Shown here piece after piece: positions 19,376 through 62,894 of a stretch of DNA of 64,000 bases. Within the stretch, counting starts at the first letter, position 1. Every line of letters begins with the position of its first letter. The notes under the pieces were generated by a model. The model saw only the letters and a program-made list of their open reading frames with translations. It did not search any database and was not told the DNA's origin. The stretch covers positions 6,014,001-6,078,000 of the forward strand of contig NW_025963924.1 in the NCBI RefSeq assembly GCF_023055435.1. The letters are read 5' to 3'. Position numbers and translations under genes: made by a program. The stretch comes from Haliotis rufescens. Lineage: Eukaryota.

Positions 19376-20267
19376 GAAAAATCCCTATGAAATATAAATT
19401 CGCATTAGTAGGACCATTTAGCATTAGGGGAGGGAGGGGATACAATAGTTTCTGCTTAAAGTTATAAAGTTTTGTCTGAAAGAATGAGCTTAGCAATTTT
19501 AATGCACGCCAAAGTCACCCTCAAATATCTGGAATATTGCTGACTGTGACATTTAACATACATATGTATATAAACATGTATATACTGTTCATTCCAAACT
19601 ATAGACTCCTGTATTTTATTGAGAAAATCGTTAATTGCTTGGAACAAATGAAACTCATGAAAGAATGACTTTGGTCGTGCATACGTCCATGTTAGTGTGT
19701 GTCATAACGTAGACCCAGATTCACTCATTCACTCGCTCGCTCGCTCGCTCACTCACTCGTCCAAATGGAATAACGAATTAACGATAATCTGGACTAACGA
19801 AGCATTCATCAATTATTTATAAAAGGACCATGTTTGGGTGGAGACATAACGACTGCCCCTTACTAGTGTGTTGCACAGTTTCTGAAGTATTTCCCTATAC
19901 TTTTTAGCAGCAGGATTTCTGCACATGTACGCAACAAACGTAATTCCAACATAATCCATAAACACGCTATGTATTGGATTGTCTGGTCAAAGTTTTGACA
20001 TAATTATTATCTGAACTCCAAACACAAATTCCAGGCCCCAATGGTCCCAAATGGAGAGGGGGGTGGGGGGTTGGTATTATTTGCTCCATCTCATGGCATT
20101 GGCAAGTTGCCATCGAGTGGGTAGGTTGAGTCTTGTGAACGCAATTACCCCTGGGGTACATTTGTGTTAGGATACCCCGTTGTTAAATACTTGCAGACAA
20201 ATACATGTATTGTTTTAGGAACTCTTTAATTTACATTGCAGTTGTGATTTGTAAAGCAACGGATTTT

Positions 20268-27424: not shown

Positions 27425-29119
27425 TTATGAACACCTGCAGGCACGCAAGTTAACGTCAAAGACAGGTGTCCCCGTTCCGTTATCGTGGCACTCGCCAGTG
27501 TAGACCAGTCGCTGATTAACACATACAACGTAGTAAGAAGAGCCGGGGCGATTTTCGTAGGCGTTGAGGCCGTCAGGAAGGAACCTGCAGGTTGGGTTGT
27601 TGACGAAACACGGTGGTCCACAGTTGACTGACCCAAGACACGCGTACCGGGGATACTCGCCTGGAAACAGACATACCACAGATCCACCTAAAGTTGTCAT
27701 TTGAAACCGAACACTGACGAACAACAAGTGCATGTCCGTTTGATTTCAAAGGGAAAAAATAGCGGGATCAAGTTTATAAAACAGTCCTCTAATTTGATTT
27801 GACTCAAATGTGTTCACTTTTTCCAATAGAAATGAATCAACGCATCTTTGTGTGTATGGATAAAATATGGCAACTACTGTGAAGCGCGTTCAGCCATTGG
27901 CCAGTAATTAAGGATTGCTGTAGTTAATAACTGTTAAAAGTTATATATATATTCATGCTCTTGGTTTCCATCGAAACGAGACCCGTGAAGATTCCGGGGT
28001 AGAATAGGTCTTCAGCAACCAGTGCTTGCCCTAAAAGGCGACTATGCTTTTCGTAAGATGCGACTAACGGGATCGGGTGGTCAGGCTCGCTGACTTGGTT
28101 GAAGCATGTCATCGATCCCAATTGCGTGGATCGATGTTTATGGTATTAATCACTGGATTGTCTGGTCCAGACTCGATTACGTACAGGCCGCCGTTATATA
28201 GCTGGAATATTGCTGAGTGCGCGTTAAACAACAAACATACAAACAAACTATCGAAACGAAGAGGAAGCCTGGGCACTCACATTTTCCCAGGGGCTCCATT
28301 CTGTTACCGCACTGGACCATGCTGTAGTGCTCACATCTCTGTGTTCCAGGGTTGTACAGCTGCGGGTAGGGACATTCCTGTAGGTTTTTCCCCAAGATGA
28401 TGCGTTAAATTTCATGGCTGGGGCGCTGCAATTGTAGTACTGGGCACACTTTGTGGGGTGGGGTATTAGCGTCTTCGTCGTCGTGTTGCAAATGGGGTTC
28501 ACGTCGCTTGTCGGTGCAATCAATGCTGATACTGGAATCAGTGTGAAGTGGCAGGTTGAAACTAGTTACCACAAAAAAACATAGCACAACACACGCACAG
28601 ACATACAAGAACACAACACACATATACTATACACACACACGGAGGAAACACACAACATACCCACACAACACATACATCACGCACAACACACGCACAGACA
28701 TACAAGAACACAACACACATATACTGTACACACACACGGAGGAAACACACAACATACCCACACAACACATACATCACGCACAACACACGCACAGACATAC
28801 AAGAACACAACACACATATACTATACACACACACGGAGGAAACACACAACATACCCACACAACACATACATCACGCACAACACACGCACAGACATACAAG
28901 AACACAAAACACATATACTATACACACACACGGAGGAAACACACAACATACACACACACGGAGGCAACACACATTATACCCACACAACACATACATCACG
29001 CACAACACAGCACAACACAACACAACACAACGTCTTTAAAACAGAGAATCCTGCTCACATGATTCCAGGGCGACCAGCAGCACCATCAGGAAGTACAACA
29101 CTCGACACTCACACATCAT
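27425..29119 (-). pseudogene. Gene D: B-type paralogue with 1-nt deletion in mid exon 2; exons 29119-29059, 28531-28281, 27660-27425
   Basis: Exon 2 is 251 nt; + strand GATGCGTTAAAT at ~28400 versus GATGCGGTTAAAT in B and G. The ORF track splits here into two frames. Exons 1 and 3 are open. The GG>G loss could be a read error. Confidence 0.7.
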
Positions 29120-36400: not shown

Positions 36401-37925
36401 GTTAGTCTTGTTCTAGACAGTTGTAGTCAGTTATAGTCTTGTTCTAGACAGTTATAGTCTTGTTCTAGACAGTTGCAGTCTTGTTCTAGACAGTTACAGT
36501 CTTGTTCTAGACAGTAACAGTCTTGTTCTAGACAGTTACAGTCTTGTTCTAGACAGTAACAGTTTTGTTCTAGACAGTTGCAGTCTTGTTCTAGACAGTT
36601 GCAGTCTTGTTCTAGACAGTTGCAGTCTTGTTCTAGACAGTTGCAGTCTTGTTCTAGACAGTTGCAGTCTTGTTCTAGACAGTTGCAGTCTTGTTCTAGA
36701 CAGTTACAGTCTTGTTCTAGACAGTTACAGTCTTGTTCTAGACAGTTGTAGTCTTGGTCTAGACAGTTGCAGTCTTGTTCCAGACAGTTGCAGTCTTGTT
36801 CTAGACAGTTACAGTCTTGTTCTAGACAGTTAGTCTTGTTCTAGACAGTTACAGTCTTGTTCTAGACAGTTACAGTCTTGTTCTAGACAGTTGTAGTCTT
36901 GTTCTAGACAGTTGTAGTCTTGTTCTAGACAGTTACAGTCTTGTTCCAGACAGTTGCAGTCTTGTTCTAGACAGTTGCAGTCTTGTTCTAGACAGTTGCA
37001 GTCTTGTTCCAGACAGTTGCAGTCTTGTTCTAGACAGTTGCAGTCTTGTTCTAGACAGCTGCAGTCTTGTTCTAGACAGTTGCAGTCTTGTCTAGACAGT
37101 TAATCTTGTTCTAGACAGTTGTAGTCAGTTATAGTCTTGTTCTAGACAGTTATAGTCTTGTTCTAAACAGTTGCAGTCTTGTTCCAGACAGTTGCAGTCT
37201 TGTTCTAGACAGTTGCAGTCTTATTCTAGACAGTTACAGTCTTGTTCCAGACAGTTGCAGTCTTGTTCTAGACAGTTAGTCTTGTTCTAGACAGTTGTAG
37301 TCAGTTATAGTCTTGTTCTAGACAGTTATAGTCTTGTTCTAGACAGTTGCAGTCTTGTTCCAGACAGTTGCAGTCTTGTTCTAGACAGTTAGTCTTGTTC
37401 TAGACAGTTGTAGTCAGTTATAGTCTTGTTCTAGACAGTTATAGTCTTGTTCTAGACAGTTGCAGTCTTGTTCCAGACAGTTGCAGTCTTGTTCTAGACA
37501 GTTGCAGTCTTGTTCTAGACAGTTATAGTCAGTTACAGTCCTGTTCTAGTCAGTTACAGTCTTGTTCTAGACAGTGGCAGTCTTGTTCCAGACAGTCATA
37601 GTCAGTTACAGTCTTGTTCTAGACAGTTGCAGTCTTGTTCTAGACAGTTATAGTCAGTTACAGTCTTGTTCTAGACAGTTATAGTCAGTTACAGTCCTGT
37701 TCTAGTCAGTTACAGTCTTGTTCTAGACAGTTATAGTCAGTTACAGTCCTGTTCTAGTCAGTTACAGTCTTGTTCTAGACAGTGGTAGTCTTGTTCCAGA
37801 CAGTTATATTCAGTTACAGTCTTGTTCTAGACAGTTATAGTCAGTTACAGTCTTGTTCTAGACAGTTGCAGTCTTGTTCTAGACAGTTGCAGTCTTGTTC
37901 TAGACAGTTGCAATCTTGTTCCAGA
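33420..37925 (+). repeat. 21-bp minisatellite (CAGTTGCAGTCTTGTTCTAGA)n, ~4.5 kb, with 10-nt inserts and higher-order blocks
   Basis: Direct reading of the tandem units. Confidence 0.97.
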
Positions 37926-38059
37926 CACTTGTTTGATAAAGTTACCAGGATCTGTAGCGAAACGTCGCACTGAAAGAATAGATAAGTAACAGTCTTGTTG
38001 CAGCTGTGATGACAGCTACAGGCTCACAGATGTGTCTACAGGCACACCTTGTACAAAGT

Positions 38060-38305
38060 AATGTCACTTGGTCCCAGCTGTTCCTTACAGTCATCATCAC
38101 TTGGTCACAGATGTTACTTACAGTCATCATCACTTGGTCACAGATGTTACTTACAGTCATCATCACTTGGTCACAGATGTTACTTACAGTCATCATCACT
38201 TGGTCACAGATGTTCCTTACAGTCATCATCACTTGGTCACAGATGTTACTTACAGTCATCATCACTTGGTCACAGATGTTCCTTACAGTCATCATCACTT
38301 GGTTA
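38060..38305 (+). repeat. 33-bp minisatellite (CTTACAGTCATCATCACTTGGTCACAGATGTT[C/A])n
   Basis: About 7 tandem units. Confidence 0.95.
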
Positions 38306-38767: not shown

Positions 38768-41676
38768 TTACGAACACCTGCAGGCGCGCAATTCGGCGTC
38801 AAAAATAGGTGCTCCCGTTCCGTAATCGTGGCACACGCCAGTGTAGACCAGTCGCTGATTAACGCACACAACGTAGTAGGGAGAGTTGAGGCGCCATTCG
38901 TAGACGTTGAGGCCGTCGGCGAGGTTCCTGCAGGTAGGGTTGTTAACGTGGCACGGTTGCCCACAGTCCGGTCCCCCAAGACATGCATGCTGGTCATATT
39001 CGCCTGGTAATGAACATATTTCAGATCCCGCTATATTTGTAATTTGAATCCGAAAGCTTTCCTCCTACATTAAGTTGACATAATATAACTGGAATATTGT
39101 TAAAAGCGGCGTTAAACCCAACTCACTCACTCACTCTGAAAGAAAATGAATAATGTCGAATTGGAACTAAAGACTCATGAAAGAACTTGGTATAAGGGAC
39201 ATACGGCATTATACCACGTACTAGTATAAGGCCAGTATGTCAAAACCTAAAGACATTTCCATTCCTCTTTTGTACTGGATTCCAAAGCTACATAAACATC
39301 CCTACAAAGAGAGATATATTGCTGAGTCCAGGATGTACCACCAAATTCTCCATCTCACAGATTAACCACAATCCGAAGTACAACCAAGGAAGGACTTCTT
39401 TCATTACATTCGCAGAACGTATTTGAGACAAGACTTATTTGACTTAATATCATGTGGATTATCAAAACTCCAAGGGATTTGTTTGAATTTTTACAATTTC
39501 AGAAAAGAACCAAGTTCACTTATTTCAAAATATTTCATTTTTCATCTTTGTACAATTAGGGAAAAACTTCATTCCTTGATCCATGGGGCATTTGTTACTA
39601 AACATGGTGACCATATTTACATCTGTCTTCAGAGGTTCAGGACAAATTCAACGAATGAAAGCAAATGTCAACTGAAGTTTAATGTGAAAACAATTTGTGA
39701 AATGCTGGACTTCCTAATTGATATTATATATGTGAAATTTAGGGGTTAGGGGTAAGGCATTTAGGCAAGAAGTAGGCATCCCCTTCTGGCCCCCTTCTAG
39801 CTGAACTGTTTCTTTAAGCATGAATCTGAATTTCTGCTCGAATTGGCAAAATCAAAACAAGGGCGTATAAGCCAAGAAGTTTGACTTGTGGTGTATCATT
39901 GATAATGGTCAAATAGCCACTTTTACCTACTCGAGCTAGAAATAATAGAGACCAATGAAACTGACTCATCTGTTTCAGAATTAGATCTATGCATTAACAT
40001 TCGGAGTGACAAAGAGCTATCCACATGACAGTGTGACAAGAGGGATGATGATTTAACTTTCCAATAGTCAACTCTCCCTTTATGTCGAGTAATGTTCCAA
40101 CAGCTGCTGCCTGTCGTGTCTACATTACACAACTTTTGAGGTAAAATCGATCTTGCTCTTTATACAAAGATCTTAAAGAGCATCATACTTGCTCAAAAGT
40201 TGTTCGATCAAGGATAGTAAAAGCGACAAAATCCTTCCCATATCCATAAGAAATCTCTGTCAAAAGTTTATTTACGATTCGGACTATATCATGAGCATGT
40301 GTTCATGAATCACTATCAAATAGTGATGATACCAGGTGTTACCGAAAAGTCGAACGTATCCTTGCCAACCAGTGGCACACGTCACAAACACATGCAGAGG
40401 CAAGACAAGTGTTCAAATGACAAAACACAGGAACAATATGGTAAAAGTCAAAATAGGGAATTGTATCCGAAATCATTGTTGTCACTGATGCTTCAAACTT
40501 GGAGATGTCCTGCTTATGTCTACCACAAAACTCCACCTCGGTTATAAAAGGTTAGGGTTTGTTTAGATTTAATTATGTCATAAATTCTGCAACAGGGGCG
40601 GGGGATATAGCCATGTTAGTGGCTAACTCTTGTTACTGTTAAAGGTACGTCTATGCTCCTATTTTCTTTGGAGAATAAGGAAGCCTGGGTACTTACATTT
40701 CCCCAGGGGCTCTGTCCTGCTGCCACACGTGACCATGCTGTAGTGCTCACATCTCTGTGTTCCAGGGTTGTACAACTGCGGGTAGGGACATTCCTGTAGG
40801 TTCTGCTCCCAGGAGTCTTCCATGGCAGGCGTGCTGCAGTCATAGTACTGGGCGCACTTAGTGGGGTGGGCGATCAGTGTTTCCGTTGTCGTCATGCAAA
40901 TGGGGTTCACGTCGCTTGTGGGTGCATTCACAGCTGATGCTGGAATCAGCGTGAAGTGACAGGTTAAACACTAGCTTGTGAGTGAGGACTCTGAGGTCCA
41001 CTCCACCCCTTGTTAACAATGCCACCAGAAACTCCGCACTCCCCCTACCTATACCTACCCCCTCTCAACAATAACCTCTCTTACACCCCACATCGCATCC
41101 CTCTCTCCACCTATCTTTCTTACCCTGCCGATTAACACTCCCACCCGGCCCCCCTTTCTCAACCAACTTTTACCACAGCCAACCAAAGATCCTCAACACA
41201 ACCCTCTCTCCACCTACCTTCTGAAACTACAGCCGTCCAACGTTCCTCACCACACCCCTAACTCCATCTACCCTCTCTTACCTTAGCCAACCAACGTTCT
41301 CCATCGAACACCTCTCTCTATGGCCATCTACCCTCTCTTACCTTAGCCAACCAACGTTCCCCATCGCACCCCTCTCTCCATCTACCCTCCCTTACCTCCA
41401 CCCAGCACAATATAGACACTACAACATACACACACAAGAACACAACACACACATAGACACACACTCACAACAAACACACATCACATAGCACAACAAACAT
41501 AGCACAACACACACATACAACAACAACAAAAACCACAACACACACATACTATACACACACAGACACAACACACACAACGTATCACAACATCACTAAGAAA
41601 GGGAATCTTGCTCACATGATTCCAAGGCGGAAATCAGCAGCATCAAGAAGCACAACGCCCTAAACTCACACATCAT
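38768..41676 (-). CDS. Gene E: secreted tandem chitin-binding-domain protein, 179 aa; join(41676-41616, 40939-40697, 39003-38768)
   Basis: Exon 1 MMCEFRALCFLMLLISALES. Exon 2 is 243 nt with six Cys. Exon 3 (C)EYDQHACLGGPDCGQPCHVNNPTCRNLADGLNVYEWRLNSPYYVVCVNQRLVYTGVCHDYGTGAPIFDAELRACRCS*. Canonical splice sites, open frame. Confidence 0.88.
39540..40545. mobile_element. Penelope-like element fragment in intron 2 of gene E: + strand RT body (~39540-40230) and inverted 3' end (~40260-40545)
   Basis: Degenerate GIP / LAELF and DKRDD..FPIVN motifs; 3' end homologous to 3000-3240 on the opposite strand. Confidence 0.65.
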
Positions 41677-43792: not shown

Positions 43793-44385
43793 ACTCGTGA
43801 TGGTCCGGGGTAGAATAGATATTCAGCAACCCATGCTTGCCGTTAAAGGTGACTATGCTTGTCGTTTTAGGCGACCAACGGGATCGGGTGGTCAGGCTCG
43901 CTGACTTGGTTGATGCATGTCATCATATCCCAATTGCGTGGATCGATGCTCATGGTTTTAATCACTGGATTGTCTGGTCCAGTTTCGATTATTTACAGAC
44001 CGCCGTCATATATCATATATATTGCTGAGTGCGGCGTTAAACAACAAATACACAAACAAACAAACACCCCCACCCGTGCTCGTGGGTTTCACCGAAGTGG
44101 TAAACGTCTGAGACCTGCATCACTTCGGGCTTTCCTCCAACATTAAGCTGACGCGCCGTGATATGACTGGAATACTGTTAAAAGTGGCGTTAAACCCAAC
44201 TCACTCACTCACTGTTCCAGTTTCAGTGACTACTGTATATTTACATTGAATAAACACATCAGTCTTCTCGTGAGATGAATCCGACAGTGATATGTGCTGT
44301 TGACTAGATTCGATCACTTACAGACCGCCGTCACATAGCTGGAATATTGCTGAGAGCGGCGATAAACAACAAACAAACAAATAAA
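43793..44385 (+). mobile_element. SINE cluster: family A (43793-44065), 3' half of family C (44070-44213), family A tail (44305-44385)
   Basis: Consensus matches. Confidence 0.8.
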
Positions 44386-44424: not shown

Positions 44425-45966
44425 TAAACTGACGTCCAAAAGAAACTTTACCAGAGTTTGAAATCACTCAAATTGCTCAAAAACAACACAACATACATGC
44501 ATGAAGTAAAGTGTATCAATATATCAACATAATCAACACTGAAAATGACAATCATACCGCGACCGAGAATGACGTCAGAGCCCCCCAAAGTTGGGTGTGG
44601 TACAAAACTCGAGCTTTCAGAATCATGGACAATAGGCAGAGTACATAAACAATCGCTCACGTTCAATAACAAGTCATTAGTAGCGTGTGTGACCACCAAA
44701 TGCCTCAATATACGCAAAAACTCTTCGACACACAGAAAAAGTCAGTCGTCTGATGAGGTCTCGTGGGATTTGACGCCATTCTTCTTGGAGAGCCAAGATC
44801 AGTTCTTGCCGGTTGGCTGGAGAGTAAGGGTCGTTGTCGAACACGACGATCCATCAAGTCCCAGACGTGTTCTATGGGGGACATGTCGGGTGAGCGTGCA
44901 GGCCACGGCAGGAGGTTGACGTTGTTGGCTGCGAGGAAGTTAGTGACAATTCTGGCTGTATGGGCTCTAGCGTTGTCATGCTGAAAAATGACACCACGTG
45001 GCTGCTGTTGGAGAAATGGTAGGACAACTGGACGAAGAATGTTATCCATGTAACGCTGAGCTGTTAAGTTTCAGTCAACGATGACCAGCGGTGTCCTCTC
45101 CTGCCCACAGATCCCTCCCCACACCATGACACTCCCTCCATCATATGGTACGACCTCCTGCACGCAACACGCCGCCGTTCGTTCACCCCTCGGCGGTAAA
45201 CACGTTGTCTTCCATCAGCCCTAAACATACAGAATCGACTTTCGTCAGTGAAGACAACCCTCTGCCAGTCACGTCGTTGCCAACGTCGTACAGTCCGGGT
45301 CCATCTCAATCGCAGACGACGATGTTGCGCTGTCAATAGCTGTCCTCTGTTTGGTCTAAAAGCCCTGATTCCATGAGCCCAGAGTCTGCTGGCCACTGTC
45401 TGTCGACTAACCCTGTGACCTAAGGCATTTGTCGCCGATGACGTTACTGTCAGGAAGCGATTTCGGAGGTGCAAGGTACGCAAGTACCGGTCATCATGGG
45501 GCGTGGTCACCCTGGGTCTGCCTGTTCTTGGCCTGTCAGCGGTCCGCCCTGTCTGTCTGTAACGTTGCATCAAGTTGGTAACGGCAACACGGGAGCAACC
45601 GAAGGTTCGTGCAATATGGGCGTGGGTGGCTCCCATCTGTAACCATACCCAAGGCTCGTTCACGTTGTTCGACTGTGAGTCGTGGCATTTCTTTTGTGTT
45701 TTTTATCACTGTGGATGTCTGACTTGCCTTTGCAATCGTTTTATATACCCTTACCCGCACATGCATTTGCAGTTGTCCGTGGTGCACGTGTTTTTCACTT
45801 TTTCGCGTGTTATCTCGCAAACATGTAACAGACTATTAACATTTTCTGCATACACTATTGCTGTATTTAGGTTATGTGTTTTAGATAGACTACATCGAAA
45901 ACAAAATTATACTTTGTCTGAAATTTATATTTTCAGTTGCTAAAGTTTCTTTTTGACGTCAGTTTA
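44425..45966 (-). mobile_element. Full-length Tc1-like transposon with frameshifted transposase (~45688-44680)
   Basis: TIRs TAAACTGACGTC.AAAAGAAACTTTA at both ends. MPRLTVEQRER N-terminus, VVFTDES, FQHDNARAH, WPARSPDMSPIEHVW motifs. Confidence 0.92.
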
Positions 45967-48184
45967 TTTGTGTAACTTTGTTACATTATAAATATTCTAT
46001 TGTGTATATTACTACCTACTTTACCAATTGAAACATGATTCCATTAGTTTAAATATGAACAATTATGATGAAAATCGTCAATAGGATATATTACAATTGA
46101 GTACAAAACACACAGAGTATTTCTCAAATATATAAGAAAACTAAGTACATTCTAGTAATTAATCCTCTTCTGGACAACCATAGAAATGAAATTCCAATGC
46201 GTTTATATATACATATAATTATACAACAATGTACGATAACGACCTCAATCCTCCCCCACACCCATACTTTAATAACGATTGTACGATAAACCCTGTACCA
46301 ACCCTGACAAGGATAGGTTTTAGTCATTTAACGCCCTTGACACTAAACTTATAAGATTATTACAATTTACGTAAAAAGTTATTACATTTAACTGCAAGTT
46401 GAGATTATTACAATTTACATCATGCAGTGATGTGTGGTTGAATTCTGATCCCAAATGGTGGGACCAGGTTTAATAGATTTTGAAACAGGTTTTCATATTC
46501 AGGGTGGAAAACAGTTGTATGCTGGATTACATTTATTTGAGTACAGTTTAGTGATATATTGCAGTGAAAGTTTAATGCGGCGCAGTTCGAGTGAAGGTTC
46601 ATCTGCCTCCACATACAAACTGTCCACGGGAGAGGTCCTAAAAGCTCCAAGACAGAATCTTAGGCCTTGATGGTGTAGAGTGTCCAATTTTTCTAAATTG
46701 CTTTTGCAGGCTCCACCATAGACAATGGAACCATAGTCTAGTTTGGAGCGTATTAACGATCTGTACAAGTGAAGGAGGGTGGTCTGATCGCCGCCCCACT
46801 CGGAATTTAAAACGACTTTGCCTTTAGATATTTAATGATACCTTGATAGGAGTACCATCTAAAAATACATCTGAATCCTTGTGAGGTTTGTATTTACGAC
46901 AAAAGTGAATACAGTTTGTTTTGGATTTAGAAAATTTGAAGCCGTTTTCGTTTGCCCATTTTTGAATTTTGTTAAGACAGAGCTGTAGTTGTCTTTCTAT
47001 TGTATTCATATTCTTACCACGACAAGAAATGTTGAAATCGTCCACAAAAAGTGAACCATCAAGGCTATTGTTTAATACTTTAGTGAGACTACTAATTTTG
47101 ATGCTGAAAAGGGTGACTGATAGTATGCTGCCTTGAGGGACGCTCTGATCTTGATCGAAATGATCAGACAGGGTAGATCCAAAGTAGTACTTGAAATTGT
47201 CTGTTGTTTAAAAATTGCAATATGAATTGAGATAATCTGCCCCTCAATCCAAATTCATGCAAATCTTTTAAAATACCATGTTTCCACGTTGTATCAGAAA
47301 AATCCCTATGAAATATAAATTCGCATTAGTAGGACCATTTAGCATTAGGGGAGGGAGGGGACACAAACGTTTCTGCTTAAAGTCATAAAGTTTCGTCTGA
47401 AAGAATGAGCTGAGCAATTTTAATGCACGCCAAAGTCACCCTCAAATATCTGGAATATTGCTGACTGTGGTATTAAACATACATATGTATATAAACATGT
47501 ATATACTGTTCATTCCAAACTATAGACTCCTGTATTTTATTGAGAAAATCGTTAATTGCTTGGAACAAATGAAACTCATGAAAAAATGACTGTGGTCGTG
47601 CATACGTCCATGTTAGTGTGTGTCATAACGTAGACCCAGATTCACTCATTCACTCGCTCGCTCGCTCACTCACTCGTTCAAATGGAATCTGTTTCGGCAG
47701 ATAATCTTGACTAACGAAGCATTCATCAATTATTTTTAAAAGGACCATGTTTGGGTGGAGACATTACGACTGCCCCTTACTAGTGTGTTGCACAGTTTCT
47801 GAAGTATTTCCCTATATTTGTCAGCAGCAGGATTTCTGCACATGTACGCAACAGACGTAATTCCAAAATAATCCATAAACATGCTATGTATTGGATTGTC
47901 TGGTCAAAGTTTCGACATAATTATTATCTGAACTCCAAACACAAATTCCAGGCCCCAATGGTCCCAAATGGAGAGGGGGGTGGGGGGTTGGTATTATTTG
48001 CCCCATCTCATGGCATTGGCAAGTTGCCATCGAGTGGGTAGGTTGAGTCTTGTGAACGCAATTTCCTCTGGGGGTACATTTGTGTAAGGATACCCCGGGG
48101 TTAAAAACATGCAGACAGATACATGTATTGTTGAGAAATTCTTTACTTCACATTGCAATTGTGATTTGTAAAGCAACGGATTTT

Positions 48185-51100
48185 TTACGAACACCTGCAG
48201 GCGCGCAATTTGGGGTCAAACATAGGCATCCCCATTCCGAAATAGTGGCACTGGCCAATGTAGACCAGTCGTTGATTAACGCACACCACGTAGTAGGTAG
48301 AGTTGAGGCGATCTTCGTAGACGTTGGGGCCGTCGGAGAGGTTCCTGCAGGTGGGGTAGTTAACGGAGCATGGTATCCAACAGCGCATTCCCTCATGGCA
48401 TTTGCCCTTCTCATATTCGCCTGGAAACAAACATATTTCAGATGCCGCTACATTTGTAATTTGAATCCGAAAGCACACCAACAACATTGTATGACCCTCT
48501 TAATATTCAAAGCAACGTTAGTATTCAAATGACAAATTTTGCAGGATTAATTTCATTTAACAGTCCTCTACTTTGGAAAACAGTAGTTTGGATGATGGAA
48601 CTGTATTACATTGTTTCTATTGAGATTGGGTAGGGGATCAATGCATTGTATTTGGACAGTGATAAGTTGTCAGGAATGTTGTACTTTTTAATGCAAGCAG
48701 TTGTGAGGAAGTTACTATATTTATATGCTGGTGTGCTGTGTAAACTGTAGGGAACTGTGATAGAGTGTTACAGAAACATGTAGAATATTCTATGTTGTGA
48801 TGACACTGTGGGAATTTCCAGTAGCTGGTTTGACCATACATAAGGGGACAAGAGCGTGCCTAATTATTTGCCTCGATGTCCACGGTTCTGAAAGAAAATG
48901 AAAAATGTCCAATTGGAACTAAAGACGCATAAAAGAACTTGGTATAAGTGACATACAACATTATACCACGTACTAGTTTAAGGCCAGTATGTTAAAACCT
49001 AAAGACATTTCCATTCCTCTGGATTCCAAAGCTACATAAACATCCCTACAAAGAGAGATCAAGTGGACGGTCCCAGGGAACAAATCTGGAACAGAACGCA
49101 ATGCCCCCACACAACACGCATTCTCTATCACTACCTCGCCTCGTTTTAAATTCGCCTCGTTGCCTGAACACCTGTAAATTTGTTAAAGATTAAAGATCAA
49201 TCACCGAAACAACAACAACAGTTCCATGGCCAGTACAGAACTTTTTGTTTCTTTGGTTGGTTGTTTTTTAACGCCGCATCCAGCAATATTCCAGCTATAT
49301 GACGGTGGTCTGTAAAGAAATCGATTCTTGACCAGATAATCCACTGATTGACATCATTAGCATCGATCCACGCAATTGAGATCGATGACATGCATCAAAC
49401 AAGTCAGTGAGCCTGTCGCCTCTTACGACAAGTCGCCTTTTACAGCAAGCATGGGTTATTGTTCTTTTGGCCACATATATGAATACACTGTCTGTCTGTC
49501 TGCCCATGGCCAGCATGATCATCGGATCCGAAACAGGTACGTGTCAACAGAATTCAGCAACATGCTTTTGTAAAGGAATTACGGAGAATCCTGTATGGCG
49601 TCATAAGGCCATTCACGATGTTTTGTTGAACGGAATCCTGAACAAGTCGAGCAATATGAGGCTAGGCGCTGTCATGTTGAAAGGTAATGCCTGGGACATG
49701 ACGACGCAAAAACGGTAGAACAACAGGGCCGATGATCTCGTCACGGTGGCGCTGTCCATTGAGATTTCCCTTTACCACTATCAAACTGGTCCTCTGTCTT
49801 GCTGTAATCCCATCCCATACCAAAACGCTGCCGCCCGAACCGATCTTCTTCCATGACACAATGATTCACCTTCACGTTCACCTCGACGTCGGTACACTCG
49901 AATCCGTCCATCGCTGTGGCTGAGGTGAAAACAAGACTCGTCAGTGAATATAACTTGTCCCCACTGCATGGCCGTCCAGCGTAGACGCTGTCTGCACCAC
50001 TGTAGACGTGCTTGACGGTGGTTTCCTGTCAAATTGGGACGTCTGGCGGGTCTTCTGGCGACAATCCCTGCACATCTGAGGCGGCGACGTATGGTTTGTG
50101 AAGATATTCGTCGAAGGCCAGGGATGCTTCTTGAAGTCACTGTTGCTGGCTGGAATTTTGTAGGTGTGCTGTTCGAATCCAGTTGTCTTGTCCATTATTG
50201 GTTACACGTGGCCTGCCACTTCTAGGATGGTCTCTGACTGCATTCGTATGTTGCCAACGTTGCCATAAACACCAAATGGTTTTTCTGTGGACGTTAAATT
50301 GTCTTGCAACATTACGTTGACTCGATCCTGCTTCAAGCATACCAATGGCTCGCAGACGCTCATTGTCGGACAGGCGTGGCATTTCGTAATGTTGAATAAT
50401 TGCATAATTTTGTTGTTTTTCTGAGTGGTTGTTGTCAGCACGATCCTAAACAATGCACATGGAAATCCCGTTAACGCACATGTTTTTATACCCATTCTTG
50501 AGTAGTGAAATACATGGGGCTTGCATAAAAGACATCTTTTGCATGGAATGCGTGCTTTAATGTAGCAGTTGCGTTTTAGTGGCTTGATTCCATACACGTC
50601 CTACAATATTGAAAACCAAGCTTCACTTGTTTGAAAAATACACTAAAATATTGGTGTCACAGGAACTTTTGTTGTTGAGTATATGATATGATCAAACGTG
50701 TGCACTTTCATTTCGTTTAAATGTACGCTAGCCTGGTGTATGTGAGGAAAAACCTATTGCATTCCTGTGATATAAATACTTTCAGCCATTTGCGGCAAAT
50801 TGGCCAGTTACTGTAGTTGAATGTTGAAGGTATATATGTCCATGCTCTTTGTTTCTATCGAGAAGAGGGAACCCAGATGTAATGTTTCAAGCAGCCGATG
50901 GGCTGTGTCACACTGGATGACAAGTGTTTAGTCGACAAAGTCATCTATATCCCCCGCTACTATATCTACTTCGTTGGGCGGGGTATAATAAACGATTGAC
51001 GACCTAGTGGCGTGCGCCATGCTTAATGTTATTCCCTCGCTTCCCTGACCCAAGGGGCATAACTCTCGTGCCTCATTACACCAAGCATACCGCTAAAATA

Positions 51101-52157
51101 CATATCGCACTGTATTATTCTCATGTGCTAACATGTGAACACGACACCTGGGTACTGGCCAAGAATACTTACACCTCCCCAGAGGCTCTCTTCTGCTGCC
51201 ACACGTGACCATGCTGTAGTGCTCACATCTCTGTGTATCAGGGTTGTACAGCTCCGGGAAGGGACATTCCTGTTGGTTCTGTCCTAAGGTGTAACCCTGC
51301 ATTTTCAGGCCCGGTGCGCTACAGTTGTAGTACTGGGCACACTCAGTTGGGTGGGGGATCAGTGTCTCCGTCGTTGTCTTACAAATGGGGTTCACGTCGA
51401 CGTTGCTTGTGGGTGAAATCAAAGCTGATGCTGGAATCAGTGTGAAGTGACAGGTTAAATACTTGTTTGCGAGTGAAGACTCTTAGGTCCACTTTATCCC
51501 TTGTTACTAGTGACGCCAAACACTCTGCACCCACCTCTGGGGAACAACGTTCTTAATCTACCCCATCAACACTCTAACCTCTCTTACACTGCACATCACA
51601 TCCACCTATTCTCTCACCTCCACCGACCACCTCTCCTCACCAAATCCATCTCTCAACCTACCCTTTTGCAGGGGTAGCCCAGTAGTTAAAGCATTCGCTC
51701 TTCACACTGAAGGCCCGGGCTCGAGTCCCCCGCCCTGATATTACTGGAATATTACTGAAGGCGATGTGAAATCACAGTCAGTCATGATCAGTCACTCACT
51801 TACCTCCGCAGACTAGCGATCCTCAATATCTCCCTTACCTCCACCCAGCACAACACTGACGGTATACAAAACGAACAGTACAACATACACGCATGAAAAC
51901 AAAGCATACTACACACAACAAACACACAATGTAACACTCACATAAAACCAACATCACACAACAGAGAACACATAAAAACGGATCACAACACACCAGAACA
52001 CAACACACACACTATACACAAACATAACGAAAGACACACAGACATACATCACACACATAATATAACGCAACAAATTAAAAAGAGAAGCCTGCTCACATGA
52101 TTCCAGGGCGGCCAGCAGCACCATCAGCAAGCACAACACTCGACACTCACACATCAT
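48185..52157 (-). CDS. Gene F: secreted tandem chitin-binding-domain protein, 184 aa; join(52157-52097, 51430-51173, 48420-48185)
   Basis: Exon 1 MMCECRVLCLLMVLLAALES. Exon 2 is 258 nt. Exon 3 (C)EYEKGKCHEGMRCWIPCSVNYPTC...LRACRCS*. Canonical splice sites, open frame; poly(A) hexamer changed to AGTAAA. Confidence 0.88.
49585..50682 (-). mobile_element. 3'-truncated Tc1-like transposon in intron 2 of gene F
   Basis: MPRLSDNERLRAIGML, GRPRVT, VIFTDES, FQHDSA motifs; absent from the matching intron of gene C. Confidence 0.85.
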
Positions 52158-55100
52158 GGGGCTGTTGATGAGATCCAAACCGTCTACAAGAAAGCTGATG
52201 CATTAACATGTTGGAGCTGATCAGTAAACGAAATTTCGGGTGTTGTGTGTTAAACAGGTTGGTGTGACTTAAAGAGCGATTCAGATATTTTAATATGAGA
52301 AATATTGATATTTTGAATGACATGTAAATGACTGTTTGGAATGTGTTTTAAAAGTACAAGTTTGGATATGACTCCAATCACTTCTTGTATCCATAATATC
52401 TTTATGTCCTAGTTTGTAAGTCAGCTACTTCAAATTCGGCAGCACCTGTCTATGGTCTTGCCTGTATAGTCCTACAGATAAAGGTCAGCCATATGGAATT
52501 TGTATGGCTTGTAGAACTGAAGTTAAAACGGTGAATACAACATATTTATTAAATATAATTATACTGGTATGTTTTATCTAACTAATATTCCACTAATAGT
52601 TAGATTAAAAGAGGTATCTCACGATTACTCCAAACTACAAAAGTACAGCTTTAATACGGCTAAAAGTGACGGAAATGTTTCTTCGGTATTGGCTCGTCAC
52701 CTCAAGTTGGCTCTGTTGACTATAAATAGAACACAAACGAGTTTCGTATATTTTAAGGATCCAGATTCAGTGTGTGCCCAGTTATGTTTGTTGGTATTCT
52801 GGGAAGGAAAATAATCAACAGCGTCCCTCTCACTTTTGTGTTCAGTAAAAAGAATGAAGAAATAATTTATTATCTTTATGCAGCATTATAATTAAAATGA
52901 ATGTAAGCTTACCTTCACAGAGCTGGACCTGTTCACGGGCAGGTGCTTGTTGTAGTTACGCTTCAGGCGTCTTGAGTGCAGCATACGCTGTCCCTGTAAC
53001 AAACAGGCGTTATCAGTGTGGAATATGGAATGAATGTTGCGCATTAAAAGTCGCTATTCTTCAGTTGACGTGAAGCGTCATTTGTCTACCACTTCACTAT
53101 AGGATTTAAATGTCTGTGTATATTTAGATATGGGAAATGCACAAGTGGTTATCTGAACAGATATGTTTTTTCAAGTGCAAGGATTCATTAACTGTTCGCG
53201 TTTTGTGAAGCGCCTGTTGTACATACACTCAAGGACACACCCAGGCACGAACGCACGCAAGCTTCTTAAGTCGAGAGCCGTAAATGTGGATGGAACGCGT
53301 TAAGGTGTTGATCCAGGTCTCATGAAGTGTGCATACGTGGTGGTTGTCAAGGTATCACTGACATAAATGTCGAATGCAATTCCCTGTTTTGACTTGTTCC
53401 AAATGTTCCTGTGTTTTTTCAGGTGAACAATTTACCTTTACCTGTATTTGTCATGGGTGCCACTGGTAGGGCGGGATAACACTCACCTGGCATCATCACT
53501 ATTTTTGTCACTGATGGGTCAAATTTGGAAATGTCCTCCACATGTCTACCATACAACTTTGCTTTGAAAGCTTTGCTGAGGTCTTGTATGTTGTAACATT
53601 GATTAAACCACTTATGAGAAAGAATGGCATGACGCTCTTTGAAATATTCACAGAAAGAACATGCTCGAATGTACCTCAAAAGTACTGAAATGTAAACAGT
53701 GAAGGCTGACTATTGGAAAGTTCAAGCCATCCCTCTTGTCATTCAGTCTTGTGGAGGAGTTTTTTGTCACCCTGAATCTTTAAATGTAGTATAAAACACG
53801 TCGGAGTGTTTGGGGAGTTTCAAAACCGGAATCCAAGGGATAAAAACCAAATGGCGTCGGCCCCGAGGTTTTATCCTAAGGTTGAGGGTTTTAAATCTCA
53901 TAGAAACCTGATGGTAAGTGTTTTATCCCTCTTGACATCCCTCTTGACATCCCTCTTATCATAAAGTATTGTGGATGGTGTTTTGTCAAACTGAATCTCT
54001 ATGCGTTGATCTAAAGATGAAAAAGATTAGGCAGTATCACTCGTCTGCTTTTATTTCTAGCTCAGGTGGGTACATCTGTGGAAGGGAAATGGCTATTTCA
54101 CCATTATTGAACGATTTTAGACCACTAATATACCTGATGCTTAAGTTCAACTTCTTGGCCAAATTCCCTTTTCACAATCTGAGCAGACCTTCCTCTTCAT
54201 GTGTATAAAGAAACAGATGAGCAAGATGGGGAGCACAATTGGTGCCCATGGGGATGCCTACCAAATTTTACATAGATGTTATCAAAGACATCATATGTTG
54301 TTTTCTCAATGTACGTCAGATAACATTTTCTTTTATATTCCACAAATTCTCCCGAACCTCTAACGATAGAGATATAACTATATCAATAGCCACCGCGTTT
54401 AGTAACAAATGCCCTATGAATCAAAGAATTATGTTTTCGTGTGGATGACAAGCACAGCTATTGACAATGGATCGGGCGATCCTGAGGCTCTGACGATTCA
54501 GTATACACGTGGAAGATGCCCACTTACGTTAATTTAACCCAGACCATGTACATGTTAGGGAAATAGTCCAATGATTTACTAATTTCATCTCTGATTTTTT
54601 TAGGGGGGAACAAGAAAAATGATGCGGAAGAGGCAGGAGTACTGTTGTGCGGCTTCAGACAACAGACACCTACTTTTTATGCAAATTGTTGATGCTGGTG
54701 CTACCTGTGCAGCAGAATGTGATTTCCCTTCTCGCGAATACCTGGTGTCATCACTTATTTTCTGGCCCGTGAAGATCCGGGGCAGAATAGGTCTCAGGCA
54801 ACCCATGCTTGCCATGAAAGGCGACTATGCTTGTCGTAAGGCCACTAACTGTGGTCAGACTCACTGAATTGGTTGATGGATGTTATCGATCCCAATTGCG
54901 TGGATCGATGCTCATGATGTCAATCACTTGATTGTCTGGTCCAGACTCGATTATTTACAGACCGCCGTCATATAGCTGGAATATTGCTGAGTGCGGCGTT
55001 AAACAACAAACAAACACTTATTTTCTGTGTTTCATTCATATCATCGTCACCGCTATTTTGCCTTTCACACCGAATGGAATCTGTTTTGTCATATAATCGA

Positions 55101-55709
55101 GACTGGGTATTGTCTGCCCTTGAAGTTATTTGTATATATATATATGTGTATATGTATAAACTGCCATGTAGATTGCTCCACCTTACGGCCAAGGGGGTAG
55201 GTTTAGTCTTGTAAACGCAGTTACCCCTGATGATATATTTGCCCTATGGGGATATATAGGTGCCGACAAATGCATACATTGTTGATATACTCTTTAATTT
55301 CAGTTGACATTGTGATTTTAAAAATAACATATATTTTATGAACACCTGCAGGCACGCAAGTTAACGTCAAAGACAGGTGTCCCCGTTCCGTTATCGTGGC
55401 ATTGGCCAGTGTAGACCAGTCGCTGATTAACGCACACAACGTAGAAAGAAGAGCCAGGGCGGTTTTCGTAGGCGTTGAGGCCGTCAGGAAGGAACCTGCA
55501 GGTTGGGTTGTTGACGAAACACGGTGGTCCACAGTTGACTGACCCGAAACACGCGTACCGGGCATACTCGCCTGGAAACAGACATACCACAGATCCACCT
55601 AAAGTTGTCATTTGAAACCGAACACTGACTAACAACAAGTGCGTGTCCGTTTGGTTTCAAATGAAAGAAATAGCGGGATCAAGTTTAAAAAATCAGTTCT
55701 CTAATTTGA

Positions 55710-57378: not shown

Positions 57379-57804
57379 TATGTATATTCATGTTCTTGGC
57401 TTCTATCGAAACGAAGAGGAAGCCTGGGCACTCACATTTTCCCATGGCTCCATTCTGCTGCCTCACGTGACCATGCTGTAGTGCTCACATCTCTGTGTTC
57501 CAGGGTTGTACAGCTGCGGGTGGGGACATTCCTGTAGGTTCTTCCCCAAGATGATGCGGTTAAATTTCATGGCTGGGGCGCTACAATTGTAGTACTGGGC
57601 ACACTTTGTGGGGTGGGGTATTAGCGTCTCCGTCGTCGTGTTGCAAATGGGGTTCACGTCGCTTGTCGGTGCAATCAATGCTGATACTGGAATCAGTGTG
57701 AAGTGGCAGGTTGAAACTAGTTTGCAAGTGGGAAGTCAACTCCACCCCTCGTTACCGTGCCACCAAACACACTGCATCCTTCTCTCTCCTTGCTCACCTC
57801 TTAC

Positions 57805-58110: not shown

Positions 58111-61100
58111 TCACCACCTCACCTCACCTCACCTCACCTCACCTCACCTCACCTCACCTCTTACTTCCGCTAAACAGCACAGTGAATCTTAGCCTCTCTT
58201 ACACGATCACCTCACCTCACCTCACCTCACCTCACCTCCGCCGACAAACGATCCTCACCGCATTCTTGCCACCTACCCTCCCTAACCTTTGCCCAACATT
58301 ACACTGAAAACAAACACACAGTAAACACACAAAGACAGCACAACACAAACACACATACTATACACAGGAAACACACATTGCAACACACATACAACACACA
58401 CCAAACATACATCACATTGTACAAGAGAAAACCCCAAAAATAAGCACAGCACATACACACGACCACTACACACCGATACCATAACCACCAAACACATCAC
58501 ATAATAGACACCACAAAAAAACATAGCACAACACAGGCACAGACATACAAGAACACAACACACATATACTTTACACACACACGGAGGCAACACACAACAT
58601 GCCCACACAACACATACATCACGCACAACACAATACAACATCTTTAAAACATTGAATCATGCTCACATGATTCCAGGGCGACCAGCAACAACATCAGGAA
58701 GTACAACACTCGACACTCACACATAATGGGGCTGCAGAAGAGATACAAATCGTCTACAAGAAAACTTATGCATTAAGTCGTATGCGATCATCTGGTTGGA
58801 TAAAACGAAATTTCACTTGTATTTTAAAACGATTGGTGTTACTCAGAGCTAGATCTGTATATTTTAATATAATAACAAATTCGTATTGTGTAGAACATGT
58901 AAATGGTCGTTTGGAATGTGTTTTAAAAGTACAATTTTGATTTGGTTGGTTGGTTTGTTGTTTAACGCTGCACTCAGCAATATTCCAGCTATATGACGGC
59001 GGTCTGTAAATAATCGAGTCTGGACTAGACAATCCAGTGATAAATATCATGAGCATCGATCCACGCAATTGGGATCGATGACATGCATCAACCAAGTCAG
59101 CGAGCCTGACCACCCGATCCCGTTAGTCGCCTTTTACTACAAGCATAGTCGCCTTTTAAGGCAAGCATGGGTTGCTGAAGACCTATTCTATCCCGGAATC
59201 TTCACGGGTCTACAAGTTTGAATATGACTCCAATCACTTCCTGTATCCATAATGATCATAATGTCCTTATGTCTCAGTGTGTCAGTCAGAAACTTCAAAT
59301 TCGGCCACACTCGGTTATCTTGGGTTAAGAAGAAAACAGCTGTCTCCCGTCTTGTCTGTATAGCTCTTCAGACAATGGTCAGCGTAAGTTAAATTCCACT
59401 TCCATTTATTATTTTGTCAATACGTGTAGAACTGAAGCTAAAACTGTAAATATTTATTGAATATACTTGTACTGGCATGCTTTATCTAACTTAAATTCCA
59501 CTTCCATTTGTTATTTTTATGCAGCCTGATTAACATAAATCACAGCTTACCTTATCAACGCTATAACCGATATAGTGCAGGTGCTTGTGGTGTCTTGACT
59601 ATAGGATTAAATGTCATTGTATATTAGATAAGAAAAATGCGCATATTCTTATCTGAACAACAGATGGGTTTTTTATGTGCAAGGATATATTGGGTCTCCC
59701 TGTGCTGTAAAGTCTATTGTACATACATGGACAGACACAGATACGCACAGACGCACGCACGGACACGGTTTTGCCTGCACAAGGCACACAGTCATCACAG
59801 ATCATGAGTTTCATTTGTTCTAAGTAATTCACGATCTTCTCAATGAAACACTGTAACCTATATTTGGGAATGAAGTTATTTTTCTCTTTGTTGTTTATTG
59901 ATGCAATCAGCCAATAATCAGCTACATGGCAAGGAGCATGTAAATGACTGAGTTTGAACCACACAATCAAGTGATATATATTTTGGGGAGGGGGACACGC
60001 AATCAAACGAGTCAAAGAGCCTGACCATCAGATCAAGTTAGTAGCTTCTCACTACCAGCATAACAGTTTGTCTTTTATTGAAATTGAACAGGGCCTGTCT
60101 CATTTCATTTTTATATCATTACCATTTCTTAGTGTGACACAATCAGTATCGTTAACAGCTGATATAATTGACAGCCGTTGTGTACGTCTGGTACGCGTAA
60201 AGGTGTTCATCCACCTGCCGTTATATGCGTCTACGTTGAGCTTATCAAAATCTCTATGAAGACGAGTTAAATGTCTGCGTGTCTGCCCAGTCAATAGATG
60301 AAAGACCCGTGAAGATCCGGGGTAGAATAGGTCTTCAGCAACCCATGCATGCCGTAAAAGGCGACTGTGCTTGTCGTAAGGCCCCTAACGGGATCAGGTG
60401 GTCAGGCTCACTGACTTGGTTGATGCATGTCATCAATCTCAATTGCGCTGATCGATGCTCATGATATTAATCACTGGATTGTCTGGTCGCCGTCATATAG
60501 CTGGAATATTGATGAGTGCGGAGTTAAAAAACAAACAAACCAACCAATCTTATCTTGGAGTCAGGTCAAAAGATGTTAGTACTTAGGAAACATACTGGCT
60601 TGTCGCATTAGTTGATATGTCACTTGTCCCAATTTCTTTCATCAACAAATCATGTAGTGAGGGTAACTTTTTATAGTTATAATATTTCAGGTCTTGTCAG
60701 TGGAAATGGCTACACACTTTTCATGTAGCCAGCTGGCTGGGACAAAATGAGTTTATTACAATTCTGTTACCCCTTTTTTAGTTTTTGCATTCTACTAATG
60801 ATAACATCAAGCACTGACTTAAAACACCATAGTTATTAGTTGTTGCAAGCAATAATCGACCTCCTCAATGAAACACTAGAGTCTATATTTTGGAATAAGC
60901 GGTAACACACGGTTATTTTGTTTAGAACCACATTGTGTCATAATACCTATCATAAAGACTTTTTCTTAATACTTTAATTTTTCTTGTAGAATGGATGAAA
61001 ACACAAACAATCAGTTTGGGTCAGAGTGTAGTGCGTTCGCGTGCCGTTTAAATTTGTAATTTATATATTAAGGATAGGGTGTGTTATTCATTTATCGTAA

Positions 61101-61669
61101 TGATTAACAGTAAAGGTGCATATGGTAAGGTTTGATATATAGTTCAGGCGTGTGAAGGAAACTGTGGACACAATCACAGCGTTTGTTGTAAACATCTTCT
61201 TTTCTTTTAAAGGGGGAGTGTTTGTGTCCCTCAGTTTCTGGACCAGCCAACCCAGAAAAAAAGACGTAAAAATAATGTCTTCCCCTGGCTTCATCCACTG
61301 TCATCATTGTTTGTTGTCTCTGTTGTGTTTGTCAAGGCAAAGTTGTATTTAACCTCAACTAAACAACTACACAGCCGGGCAAAGGAAAGTACACGCACAT
61401 GTTTGATGGTTGCTAGAAATAATTATTCGATGGTGAAGTATAACACGGTTCTCATAGTGTCTATTTACCTTTGCAGTATTTCGGCGACTGTTTTAAACCT
61501 TGCAATTGAACTGTGTTCATAACGTTTGTTATTTTGGGTCAAATCTAATTGTCACGTGTAAACGTCCATTGGCCTGGCAGTTTATGTCCTGGTGGTTTAT
61601 CACTAGCTTGATAAAGTTACCGGTATCTGTAGCGAAACGTCGCACTGAAAGAATAGAAAAGTTGAGCTC

Positions 61670-62762
61670 ATGTCTTGGTCTCGACAGTTGCAGTCTTGGT
61701 CTAGACAGGTGCAGTCTTGGTCTAGACAGTTGCAGTCTTGTTCCAGACAGTTGCAGTCTTGTTCTAGACAGTTGCAGTCTTGTTCTAGACAGTTGCAGTC
61801 AGTTACAGTCTTGTTCTAGACAGTTGCAGTCTTGTTCCAGTCAGTTACAGTCTTGTTCTAGACAGTTACAGTCTTGTTCTAGACAGTTGCAGTCTTGTTC
61901 TAGACAGTTGCAGTCTTGTTCTAGACAGTTGCAGTCTTGTTCTAGACAGTTACAGTCCTGTTCTAGACAGTTACAGTCCTGTTTTAGACAGTTACAGTCT
62001 TGTTCTAGACAGTTACAGTCTTGTTCTAGACAGTTACAGTCCTGTTCTAGACAGTTGCAGTCTTGTGCTAGACAGTTACAGTCCTGTTCTAGACAGTTAC
62101 AGTCCTGTTCTAGACAGTTACAGTCTTGTTCTAGACAGTGACAGTCTTGTTCTAGACAGTTGCAGTCTTGTTCTAGACAGTTGCAGTCTTGTTCTAGACA
62201 GTTGCAGTCTTGTTCTAGACAGTTGCAGTCTTGTTCTAGACAGTTATAGTCAGTTACAGTCTGGTTCTAGACAGTTACAGTCTTGTTCTAGACAGTTGCA
62301 GTCTTGTTCTAGACAGTTGCAGTCAGTTACAGTCTTGTTCTAGACAGTTGCAGTCTTGTTCCAGTCAGTTACATTCTTGTTCTAGACAGTTACAGTCTTG
62401 TTCTAGACAGTTGCAGTCTTGTTCTAGACAGTTGCAGTCTTGTTCCAGACAGTTACAGTCCTGTTCTAGACAGTTACAGTCCTGTTCTAGACAGTTACAG
62501 TCTTGTTCTAGACAGTTGCAGTCTTGTTCTAGACAGTTAGTCTTGTTCTAGACAGTTACAGTCCTGTTCTAGACAGTTGCAGTCTTGTTCTAGACAGTTA
62601 CAGTCTTGTTCTAGACAGTTACAGTCCTGTTCCAGACAGTTACAGTCTTGTTCTAGACAGTTACAGTCCTGTTCTAGACAGTTGCAGTCTTGTTCTAGAC
62701 AGTTACAGTCTTGTTCTAGACAGTAGCAATCTTGTTCTAGACAGTTGCAATCCTGTTCCAGA
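61670..62762 (+). repeat. 21-bp minisatellite, short paralogous array (~1.1 kb)
   Basis: Same unit and flanks as 33420-37925. Confidence 0.97.
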
Positions 62763-62894
62763 CACTTGTTTGATAAAGTTACCAGCATCTGTAGCGAAAC
62801 GTCGCACTGAAAGAATAGAAAAGTAACAGTCTTGTTGAAGCTGTGATGACAGCTACAGGCTCACAGATGTGTCTACAGGCACACCTTGTACAAA

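Follow-up and report, generated by a model that had tools for sequence, protein, structure and literature searches.

Gene F is one of a tandem array of genes for small, secreted, cysteine-rich proteins in the abalone Haliotis rufescens, and lies within the 64,000-nucleotide stretch of contig C146 analysed here (C146:6014001–6078000, hereafter the window; coordinates without a contig prefix count from its first letter). The last of its three exons differs from that of the paralogue C, carried by the other copy of the same duplicated block, at 38 of 236 nucleotides (16.1%) and 24 of 77 residues. The sequence comparison supports a third exon that diverges faster than the neighbouring noncoding DNA, mainly through replacements, on a fixed cysteine scaffold. 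The excess itself is real and statistically solid; only the F lineage shows it, and only in this exon. The best explanation, in which we place moderate confidence, is a burst of positive selection on the second domain of F after tandem duplication, followed by retention of the new form.

A search of the whole 1.33-Gb genome located at least 28 copies of an exon-3-like sequence along about 250 kb, nearly all of them within C146:5.98–6.23 Mb. Seven, A to G, fall within the window and share the minus-strand orientation. They form the repeating pairs (A,B), (C,D) and (F,G), and E lies between the pairs; five of the seven (A, B, C, E and F) appear intact. Each gene comprises three exons and encodes a secreted protein of about 175 amino acids (aa). 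Exon 1 specifies the signal peptide, exon 2 a canonical CBM14/peritrophin-A domain and exon 3 a second, divergent cysteine-rich domain. In C and F, exon 3 consists of the last two nucleotides (GC) of a split cysteine codon, 77 codons and the stop codon TAA. The features on which the comparison draws are as follows (LINE, long interspersed nuclear element; ORF, open reading frame).

48185–48420, minus strand: gene F exon 3, the last exon (sequence comparison, and an RNA contig 100% identical over 48181–48419)
51173–51430, minus strand: gene F exon 2, CBM14, ending with the T of the split cysteine codon (Pfam PF01607, E=6.5e-8, and RNA joints)
52097–52157, minus strand: coding part of gene F exon 1, signal peptide MMCECRVLCLLMVLLAALES (tblastn; intron 1 joint 51430 to 52097 in runs X6 and X10)
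20268–20503, minus strand: gene C exon 3, the comparison copy for F (sequence comparison)
23122–23382, minus strand: gene C exon 2, CBM14 (Pfam PF01607, E=5.4e-7)
18501–21347: duplicated block, C copy, with the 3′ flank and its LINE fragment, exon 3 and part of intron 2 (BLASTN)
46423–49269: duplicated block, F copy (BLASTN, 92.4% identical to 18501–21347)
18447–19404, minus strand: dead LINE reverse-transcriptase fragment 3′ of gene C (ORFs; Pfam RVT_1, E=7.5e-15)
46502–47207: LINE counterpart 3′ of gene F
38768–39003, minus strand: gene E exon 3, the third sequence, which polarises the differences between C and F (sequence comparison)

The nucleotide and residue counts for exon 3 reproduce exactly those of a preliminary description of this DNA, made from the letters alone. 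That description had also placed C and F in one duplicated block next to a dead LINE fragment, with cysteines, frame and splice sites preserved; all of this is borne out. The two copies of the block are 92.4% identical over 2877 aligned columns, the fragment matches the reverse-transcriptase profile RVT_1, and all 8 cysteines, the reading frame, the AG splice acceptor and the stop codon are kept. The multi-nucleotide codon changes that it listed are real: W36D (TGG/GAT), V56Q (GTG/CAG) and QHA/KGK at codons 4–6. Divergence amounts to 3.4% (51/1490) across the LINE fragment and 3′ flank at 18501–19996, 5.6% across the 3′ flank at 19997–20267, and 7.2% (59/822), with indels in addition, across the part of intron 2 at 20504–21347. 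Exon 3 exceeds both the LINE part (Fisher p=4e-12) and the intron (p=9e-5). CpG decay was considered as a source of the excess and rejected, the fraction of transitions being alike in the exon (18/38) and the flanks (23/51 and 24/59).

The change is confined to one lineage. Gene E shares pieces of the flanks of C and F and so provides a third sequence for three-way site patterns. At 687 noncoding sites, 12 changes are specific to F, 25 to C and 36 to E, whereas at the 236 exon sites the corresponding numbers are 30, 4 and 9. The 54 nucleotides on each side of the exon carry no F excess (2 and 1 changes), and the exons of C and E have changed at or below the rate of the flanks. Exon 3 of E differs from that of C at 10 of 77 residues and from that of F at 25. 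A tree of exon 3 puts F together with C and E (bootstrap 65); the branch of F measures 0.17 substitutions per site, compared with 0.037–0.043 for the other two. F carries the odd state where its close paralogues otherwise agree, with A6K, G9E, G14W, L31P, T54I and T62M among the examples. The F lineage has replacements in some 22 of the 77 codons; 7 of these codons took two or three nucleotide changes, while synonymous changes number only 2–3 (codons 7 and 49, possibly 3). Within codons 3–14, 14 of 36 nucleotides differ. A frameshift followed by compensation was rejected as the origin of this patch, no shifted register fitting it when inspected by eye.

Counts of synonymous and nonsynonymous change point the same way. 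By the Nei–Gojobori (NG86) method, C and F are separated by 5.9 synonymous and 32.1 nonsynonymous differences, giving a synonymous rate (dS) of 0.131, a nonsynonymous rate (dN) of 0.201 and a ratio (omega) of 1.54, against 0.10–0.68 for other pairs (C–E, 0.68; B–G, 0.10). The C–F dS is not significantly above the 7.7% of the adjacent noncoding DNA. Against that noncoding DNA, taken from the older sub-block (71/921), the proportion of nonsynonymous differences is raised (32/182, p=1.2e-4), and that of synonymous differences shows no significant excess. On the F lineage alone, 28 of 182 nonsynonymous sites have changed compared with 12 of 687 noncoding sites, about ninefold (Fisher p=9e-12), a comparison valid only if exon and flanks share one genealogy. 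Codon maximum likelihood, run with a Goldman–Yang (GY94) implementation of our own rather than codeml or HyPhy, gave a background omega of 0.57 and an F-branch omega of 2.84 for 10 close paralogues (p=0.008 against one ratio), 1.9–2.6 in five-taxon runs (p=0.013–0.026 against one ratio), and 1.6–2.6 across smaller sets and alternative topologies. With F included, the site model M2a was preferred over M1a (likelihood-ratio test (LRT) 15.95, p=3e-4), with 17% of sites at omega 3.25 (sites 8, 11, 15, 56 and 64); these models, also our own code, were fitted on a fixed, weakly supported topology to an alignment not screened for recombination. The dN/dS tests point above 1 without establishing it, and the comparison with linked noncoding DNA is the stronger argument.

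F has the properties of a working gene. All three exons have an intact ORF and intact splice sites. Among contigs from public RNA runs placed on 47900–52300, one of 290 nucleotides from run X6 (organism A) is identical to F exon 3 and joins it to exon 2 across 2752 nucleotides; the joint (48419/20 to 51172) has CT..AC ends, that is, GT..AG on the minus strand. The joint between exons 2 and 1 (51430 to 52097) is likewise present in RNA contigs at canonical sites. A twin of F, which we call F′ (L002, C146:6086789–6090019), lies 26.1 kb downstream; it differs from 46688–49918 at 7 of 3231 nucleotides (99.8% identical) and its exon 3 is identical to that of F. Transcription and correct splicing are established for F or its identical twin, F′ being an equally possible source of the transcript. 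Organisms B, D and E have F-type contigs, with 4, 8 and 8 differences, where an exon of the C type would give about 38, so that the F type of exon, at 0–8 differences, is present in four organisms. The replacements also spare the scaffold: none of the 24 falls on the 8 cysteines (p=0.042) or on the 14 positions that are invariant or nearly so across 19 family members (p=0.003).

The differences listed for the F-type contigs include two in the variable loop at residues 40–42, both nonsynonymous. One, 48294 T>A, gives Y42F in organisms B and D; the other, 48301 A>T, gives S40T in organisms A and D, accounts for most of the depth in organism A and restores the residue of C. About 45 nucleotides past the stop codon F reads AGTAAA (48133–48149) where C (20216–20232), E and the other paralogues read ATTAAA; if this is the poly(A) signal, F would carry a weaker variant.

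What does exon 3 encode? Exon 2 is a clear member of PF01607 in both genes (F, 33.0 bits; C, 30.1 bits; cut-off 22.1), with the profile covered from 1 to 53 of 53 positions and six cysteines invariant in A, C, E and F. Exon 3 matched no Pfam family at E<=1, and an hhalign comparison of the exon-3 with the exon-2 alignment gave a probability of 2.6% over 15 columns only. An AlphaFold2 model of exon 3 built on 19 paralogues reached a predicted local distance difference test score (pLDDT) of 79. All seven structure matches to its residues 20–77 with Z>=2.8 are CBM14 proteins; Der p 23 (Z 5.6), EHEP domain 2 (Z 5.4) and the CBM14 domain of CHIT1 (Z 5.1) superpose over 48–53 residues at about 2 Å, and Blo t 12 and tachycitin are also among the matches, whose strength stays at Z below 8 and Foldseek E of 0.26–1.2. 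The model thus suggests that residues 20–77 adopt a CBM14/peritrophin-A-like fold. Residues 1–19 are an extra cysteine-rich N-terminal piece, modelled with low confidence. Of the 24 replacements, 9 lie in this piece and the remainder mostly in loops 31–42 and 54–69, where the changed residues may form part of a putative ligand-binding surface.

Relatives are found within the genus. The closest proteins are uncharacterised Haliotis proteins of 170–179 aa with PF01607, and the exon-3 peptides of two paralogues just outside the window (L007 and L008) are the same as those of H. rufescens LOC124146570 and LOC124146559. Protein searches with F, which covered proteins of 57–182 aa, returned five Haliotis proteins, the best 69% identical to F; C and F themselves were not among the annotated proteins returned. 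When a H. cracherodii homologue was compared with solved structures, only the exon-2 domain matched, and weakly (Avr4-type CBM14, E=0.011). A protein atlas matched only generic mollusc CBM14 clusters, and the locus names of H. rufescens and H. rubra had no hits in a literature search.

Several results weigh against selection as the cause of the excess. Besides resting on our own code, the F-branch omega was never significantly above 1 (LRT p=0.095 with 10 taxa, 0.14–0.39 with smaller sets), and binomial tests on the synonymous and nonsynonymous counts gave p=0.03–0.16. Clustered multi-nucleotide changes are known to inflate dN/dS tests, and counting each multi-nucleotide codon as one event gave a less well supported omega of about 2.4. 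Recombination among paralogues makes site models unreliable, and without F the preference for M2a over M1a disappeared (LRT 4.58, p=0.10). The preliminary description had read exon 3 as bearing a signature of diversifying selection. The faster, mostly nonsynonymous divergence of the exon bears out part of this; dN/dS above 1 is significant in none of the tests, and the excess is a burst in one lineage, neither symmetric between the copies nor common to the family. Nor do the flanks provide a uniform neutral yardstick. The same description had them differ by a few percent, which holds on the LINE side (3.4%), not for the intron (7.2%), and not for the 100 nucleotides nearest the stop codon on the 3′ side, which are 12.1% diverged with changes on both lineages and from which exon 3 does not differ significantly. 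The two flanks of exon 3 are unlike each other; sub-blocks that appear to differ in age meet at the exon. The C–F dS is about 0.13 in exon 2 as well as in exon 3, roughly twice the 6% of 3.1 kb of noncoding DNA. Finally, exon 2 of A (10231–10488) differs from that of C (23122–23382) at 35 of 258 nucleotides (dS 0.33, omega 0.34) inside a 5.8-kb block that is 96.9% identical and about 99–100% identical from around 10780 onward. So high a dS marks this divergence as the product of a mosaic history or of the edge of a block, and not of selection on rate. An exon of the array hence does not always have the same history as its flanks.

The uneven flanks, the dS of about 0.13 and the divergent exon 2 of A and C would fit a mosaic genealogy, in which exon 3 is simply older: gene conversion or unequal crossing-over would have homogenised the noncoding DNA of the C and F blocks, most recently on the LINE side, and passed over the diverged exon, with no need for selection on rate. 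Consistent with it, exon 3 of C is closer to that of E than to that of F despite the flanks that C and F share. We regard this account as unlikely, although it is one to be taken seriously. Nearly all of the excess is nonsynonymous, and it falls on a single lineage: a three-way split of the pairwise counts assigns about 27.5 nonsynonymous and 4.4 synonymous differences to F, 4.5 and 1.5 to C, and 7.5 and 3.5 to E. Were the exon older and its omega the usual 0.57 or so of the family, its 22 replacements should be accompanied by some 13 synonymous changes, where 2–3 are seen. In the flank pieces common to E, moreover, the noncoding branch of F is the shortest, and an unconverted island of amino-acid differences is itself usually explained by selection against conversion. 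We infer that the excess arose by selection and not through a different genealogy.

The excess could also have been imported. Gene conversion from an older donor was rejected for a donor present in the genome, since whole-genome searches at the protein and DNA levels found none, and the preliminary description had named dN/dS below 1 with raised dS as its mark, where we find 1.54 with a dS of 0.13 and only 2–3 F-specific synonymous changes. It is improbable that the interior of F exon 3 was overwritten from a divergent paralogue that has been lost or was never sampled. The changed zone (48214–48410) is bounded by conserved exon ends that could have anchored the tract by homology, donors could have been lost from an array of at least 28 copies with birth-and-death turnover, and some F states (W14, Y21, Q56 and P69) recur in H. 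rubra, H. asinina or distant paralogues. However, the next-best DNA match in the assembly after F and F′ is C, at 84%; in sliding 30-nucleotide windows compared with 18 paralogues, no part of F resembled a distant paralogue more than it did C or E; and F-specific states are found in other copies no more often (24/34) than those specific to C (7/8) or E (11/13). A donor evolving at the usual omega of the family would bring about 13 synonymous differences, not 2–3, which counts against it, and the donor would itself need a history of omega above 1. Relaxed constraint, with F a decaying or redundant copy gathering neutral changes, seems slightly less probable still. It would fit an F-branch omega statistically compatible with 1, the disabling changes in the neighbours D, G and E2, and the absence of C and F from the annotated proteins that the searches returned. 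But decay cannot exceed the neutral rate and the exon has diverged 2–5 times as far as its flanks; the frame, splice sites and cysteines are preserved along with the 14 invariant positions, spliced transcripts attest to expression, and the F type is kept in other organisms and in a twin with an identical exon. Clustered multi-nucleotide mutation or error-prone repair acting without selection is the explanation we find hardest to credit. Although 7 of the 22 changed codons have two or three adjacent changes, and the codon 3–14 patch is dense, synonymous sites, cysteine codons and the adjacent intron and untranslated region should have been hit equally and show no F-specific excess, and the changes extend over about 200 nucleotides in at least five clusters.

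Under positive selection, the sequence of events would be as follows. The block carrying C and F was duplicated, and the F lineage then underwent a burst confined to exon 3 in which about 22 of 77 codons were replaced while the cysteines and the 14 invariant positions stayed fixed. Directional selection would have remodelled the second domain in its variable loops and its N-terminal piece, amounting to functional divergence after duplication, and the new F form would then have been retained. The preliminary description had instead supposed that these proteins face an evolving ligand. F-type exons at 0–8 differences in four organisms, together with the identical exon of F′, look more like divergence after duplication followed by retention than like an arms race still running.

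Signals of this kind are well known, abalone included; the novelty lies in the gene family. Abalone sperm lysin and sp18 are paralogues that Metz, Robles-Sikisaka and Vacquier are said to have described, in 1998, as being under positive selection (PNAS 95:10676, as cited in PMC9022041; see also Carlisle et al. 2022, PMC9022041). They resemble the F family in belonging to the same genus, in being small, secreted, tandem paralogues, in nonsynonymous divergence that exceeds intron divergence and in diversification after duplication (PMC9022041). Unlike the disulfide-rich, CBM14-type F family, however, lysin has an unrelated helical fold, and its partner VERL, their coevolution and an omega above 1 are solidly established, whereas omega above 1 is not significant for F. 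A second parallel is found at the level of fold. EHEP of the sea hare Aplysia is a secreted gastropod protein made only of peritrophin-A/CBM14 domains, and residues 20–77 of F exon 3 superpose on its second domain (Z 5.4, root-mean-square deviation 1.9 Å over 51 residues). EHEP has three domains rather than two, and sequence similarity is undetectable, so that the likeness is one of fold only. Its ligand is phlorotannin from brown algae, which abalone also eat, and the fold can thus bind a ligand other than chitin. Among CBM14 proteins more widely (PF01607; CHIT1, 5hbf; tachycitin, 1dqc; Der p 23, 4zce), exon 2 is a bona fide member; exon 3 has a similar cysteine framework and, in the model, a similar fold, but differs in having no Pfam or profile match and in its extra N-terminal piece of about 19 residues. 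Divergence islands between converting duplicates, such as human RHD and RHCE, also set a short coding segment far more diverged than its homogenised paralogous surroundings; in C and F, by contrast, ongoing conversion is only suggested by the heterogeneous flank divergence.

These parallels bear on function. The preliminary description had thought rapid change unexpected for simple binding to invariant chitin, a contrast that assumed the function. Exon 3 has no Pfam match, and the CBM14 fold includes proteins that do not bind chitin: EHEP binds brown-algal phlorotannin and not chitin (PMC10619976), and no binding to chitin is seen with Der p 23 (PMC10619976, PMC5271319). CBM14 genes are also upregulated in herpesvirus-resistant paua (PMC7558354). 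By analogy, the family may bind variable foreign molecules rather than chitin, for example the phlorotannins that a kelp grazer takes into its gut with brown algae, or the surfaces of pathogens, with the burst in F having rebuilt the binding face of the second domain and the array forming a diversifying repertoire kept by birth-and-death; we offer this as a speculation with a low chance of being right. If the excess in F does reflect selection, the family would join lysin and sp18 as a case of coding sequence outrunning linked noncoding DNA, here outside the fertilisation system, and about 22 residues would be pinpointed in a small, easily expressed disulfide-rich domain that was remodelled in a step-like episode. 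The case bears on the role of CBM14-fold proteins in molluscs, and it carries a caution, namely that in mosaic tandem arrays the contrast between an exon and its flanks is no clean neutral test.

The third exons of the remaining copies in the window are placed as follows.

5296–5511, minus strand: gene A exon 3, coding part
14533–14763, minus strand: gene B exon 3, coding part
27428–27658, minus strand: gene D exon 3, coding part (exon 2 broken)
55339–55569, minus strand: gene G exon 3, coding part (stop in exon 2, start Met lost)

D and G are likely pseudogenes. Exon 2 of D (28276–28587) has a change of frame and a stop, and in G a cysteine codon of exon 2 (57445–57726) has become a stop and the start Met of exon 1 (58668–58727) reads Ile. 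Their third exons are still near-identical to that of the intact B, and disabled copies so similar to an intact one point to birth-and-death turnover in the array. E and G recur as well as F (E2, E3 and G2), forming a higher-order repeat of about 26 kb; the F/F′ repeat is either a very recent duplication or a duplication in the assembly. E2 is among the copies with disabling changes and carries Cys7 to Tyr.

Repeats of several kinds lie between and within the genes. A satellite with a 21-nucleotide unit occupies 33420–37931 in about 215 copies, with higher-order periods of 42 and 63 nucleotides, and is followed at 38064–38303 by a 33-nucleotide repeat. A second pair of such satellite and 33-nucleotide arrays occurs near the end of the window (61600–62860), the arrays flanking E-type genes. 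Fragments of Tc1/mariner-type transposases (Pfam HTH_Tnp_Tc3_2) were found at 45067–45702 and 49784–50194, the latter inside intron 2 of F, in a stretch (about 49.6–50.7 kb) that does not align with intron 2 of C. More than 15 copies of a dispersed repeat, each about 270 bp long, lie in the window (for example 49223–49516, 10728–10994, 23638–23904 and 43793–44065). Its contig depth reaches about 10^4–10^5 in all four runs, far above that of the genes, and it is a very abundant element resembling a short interspersed nuclear element (SINE).

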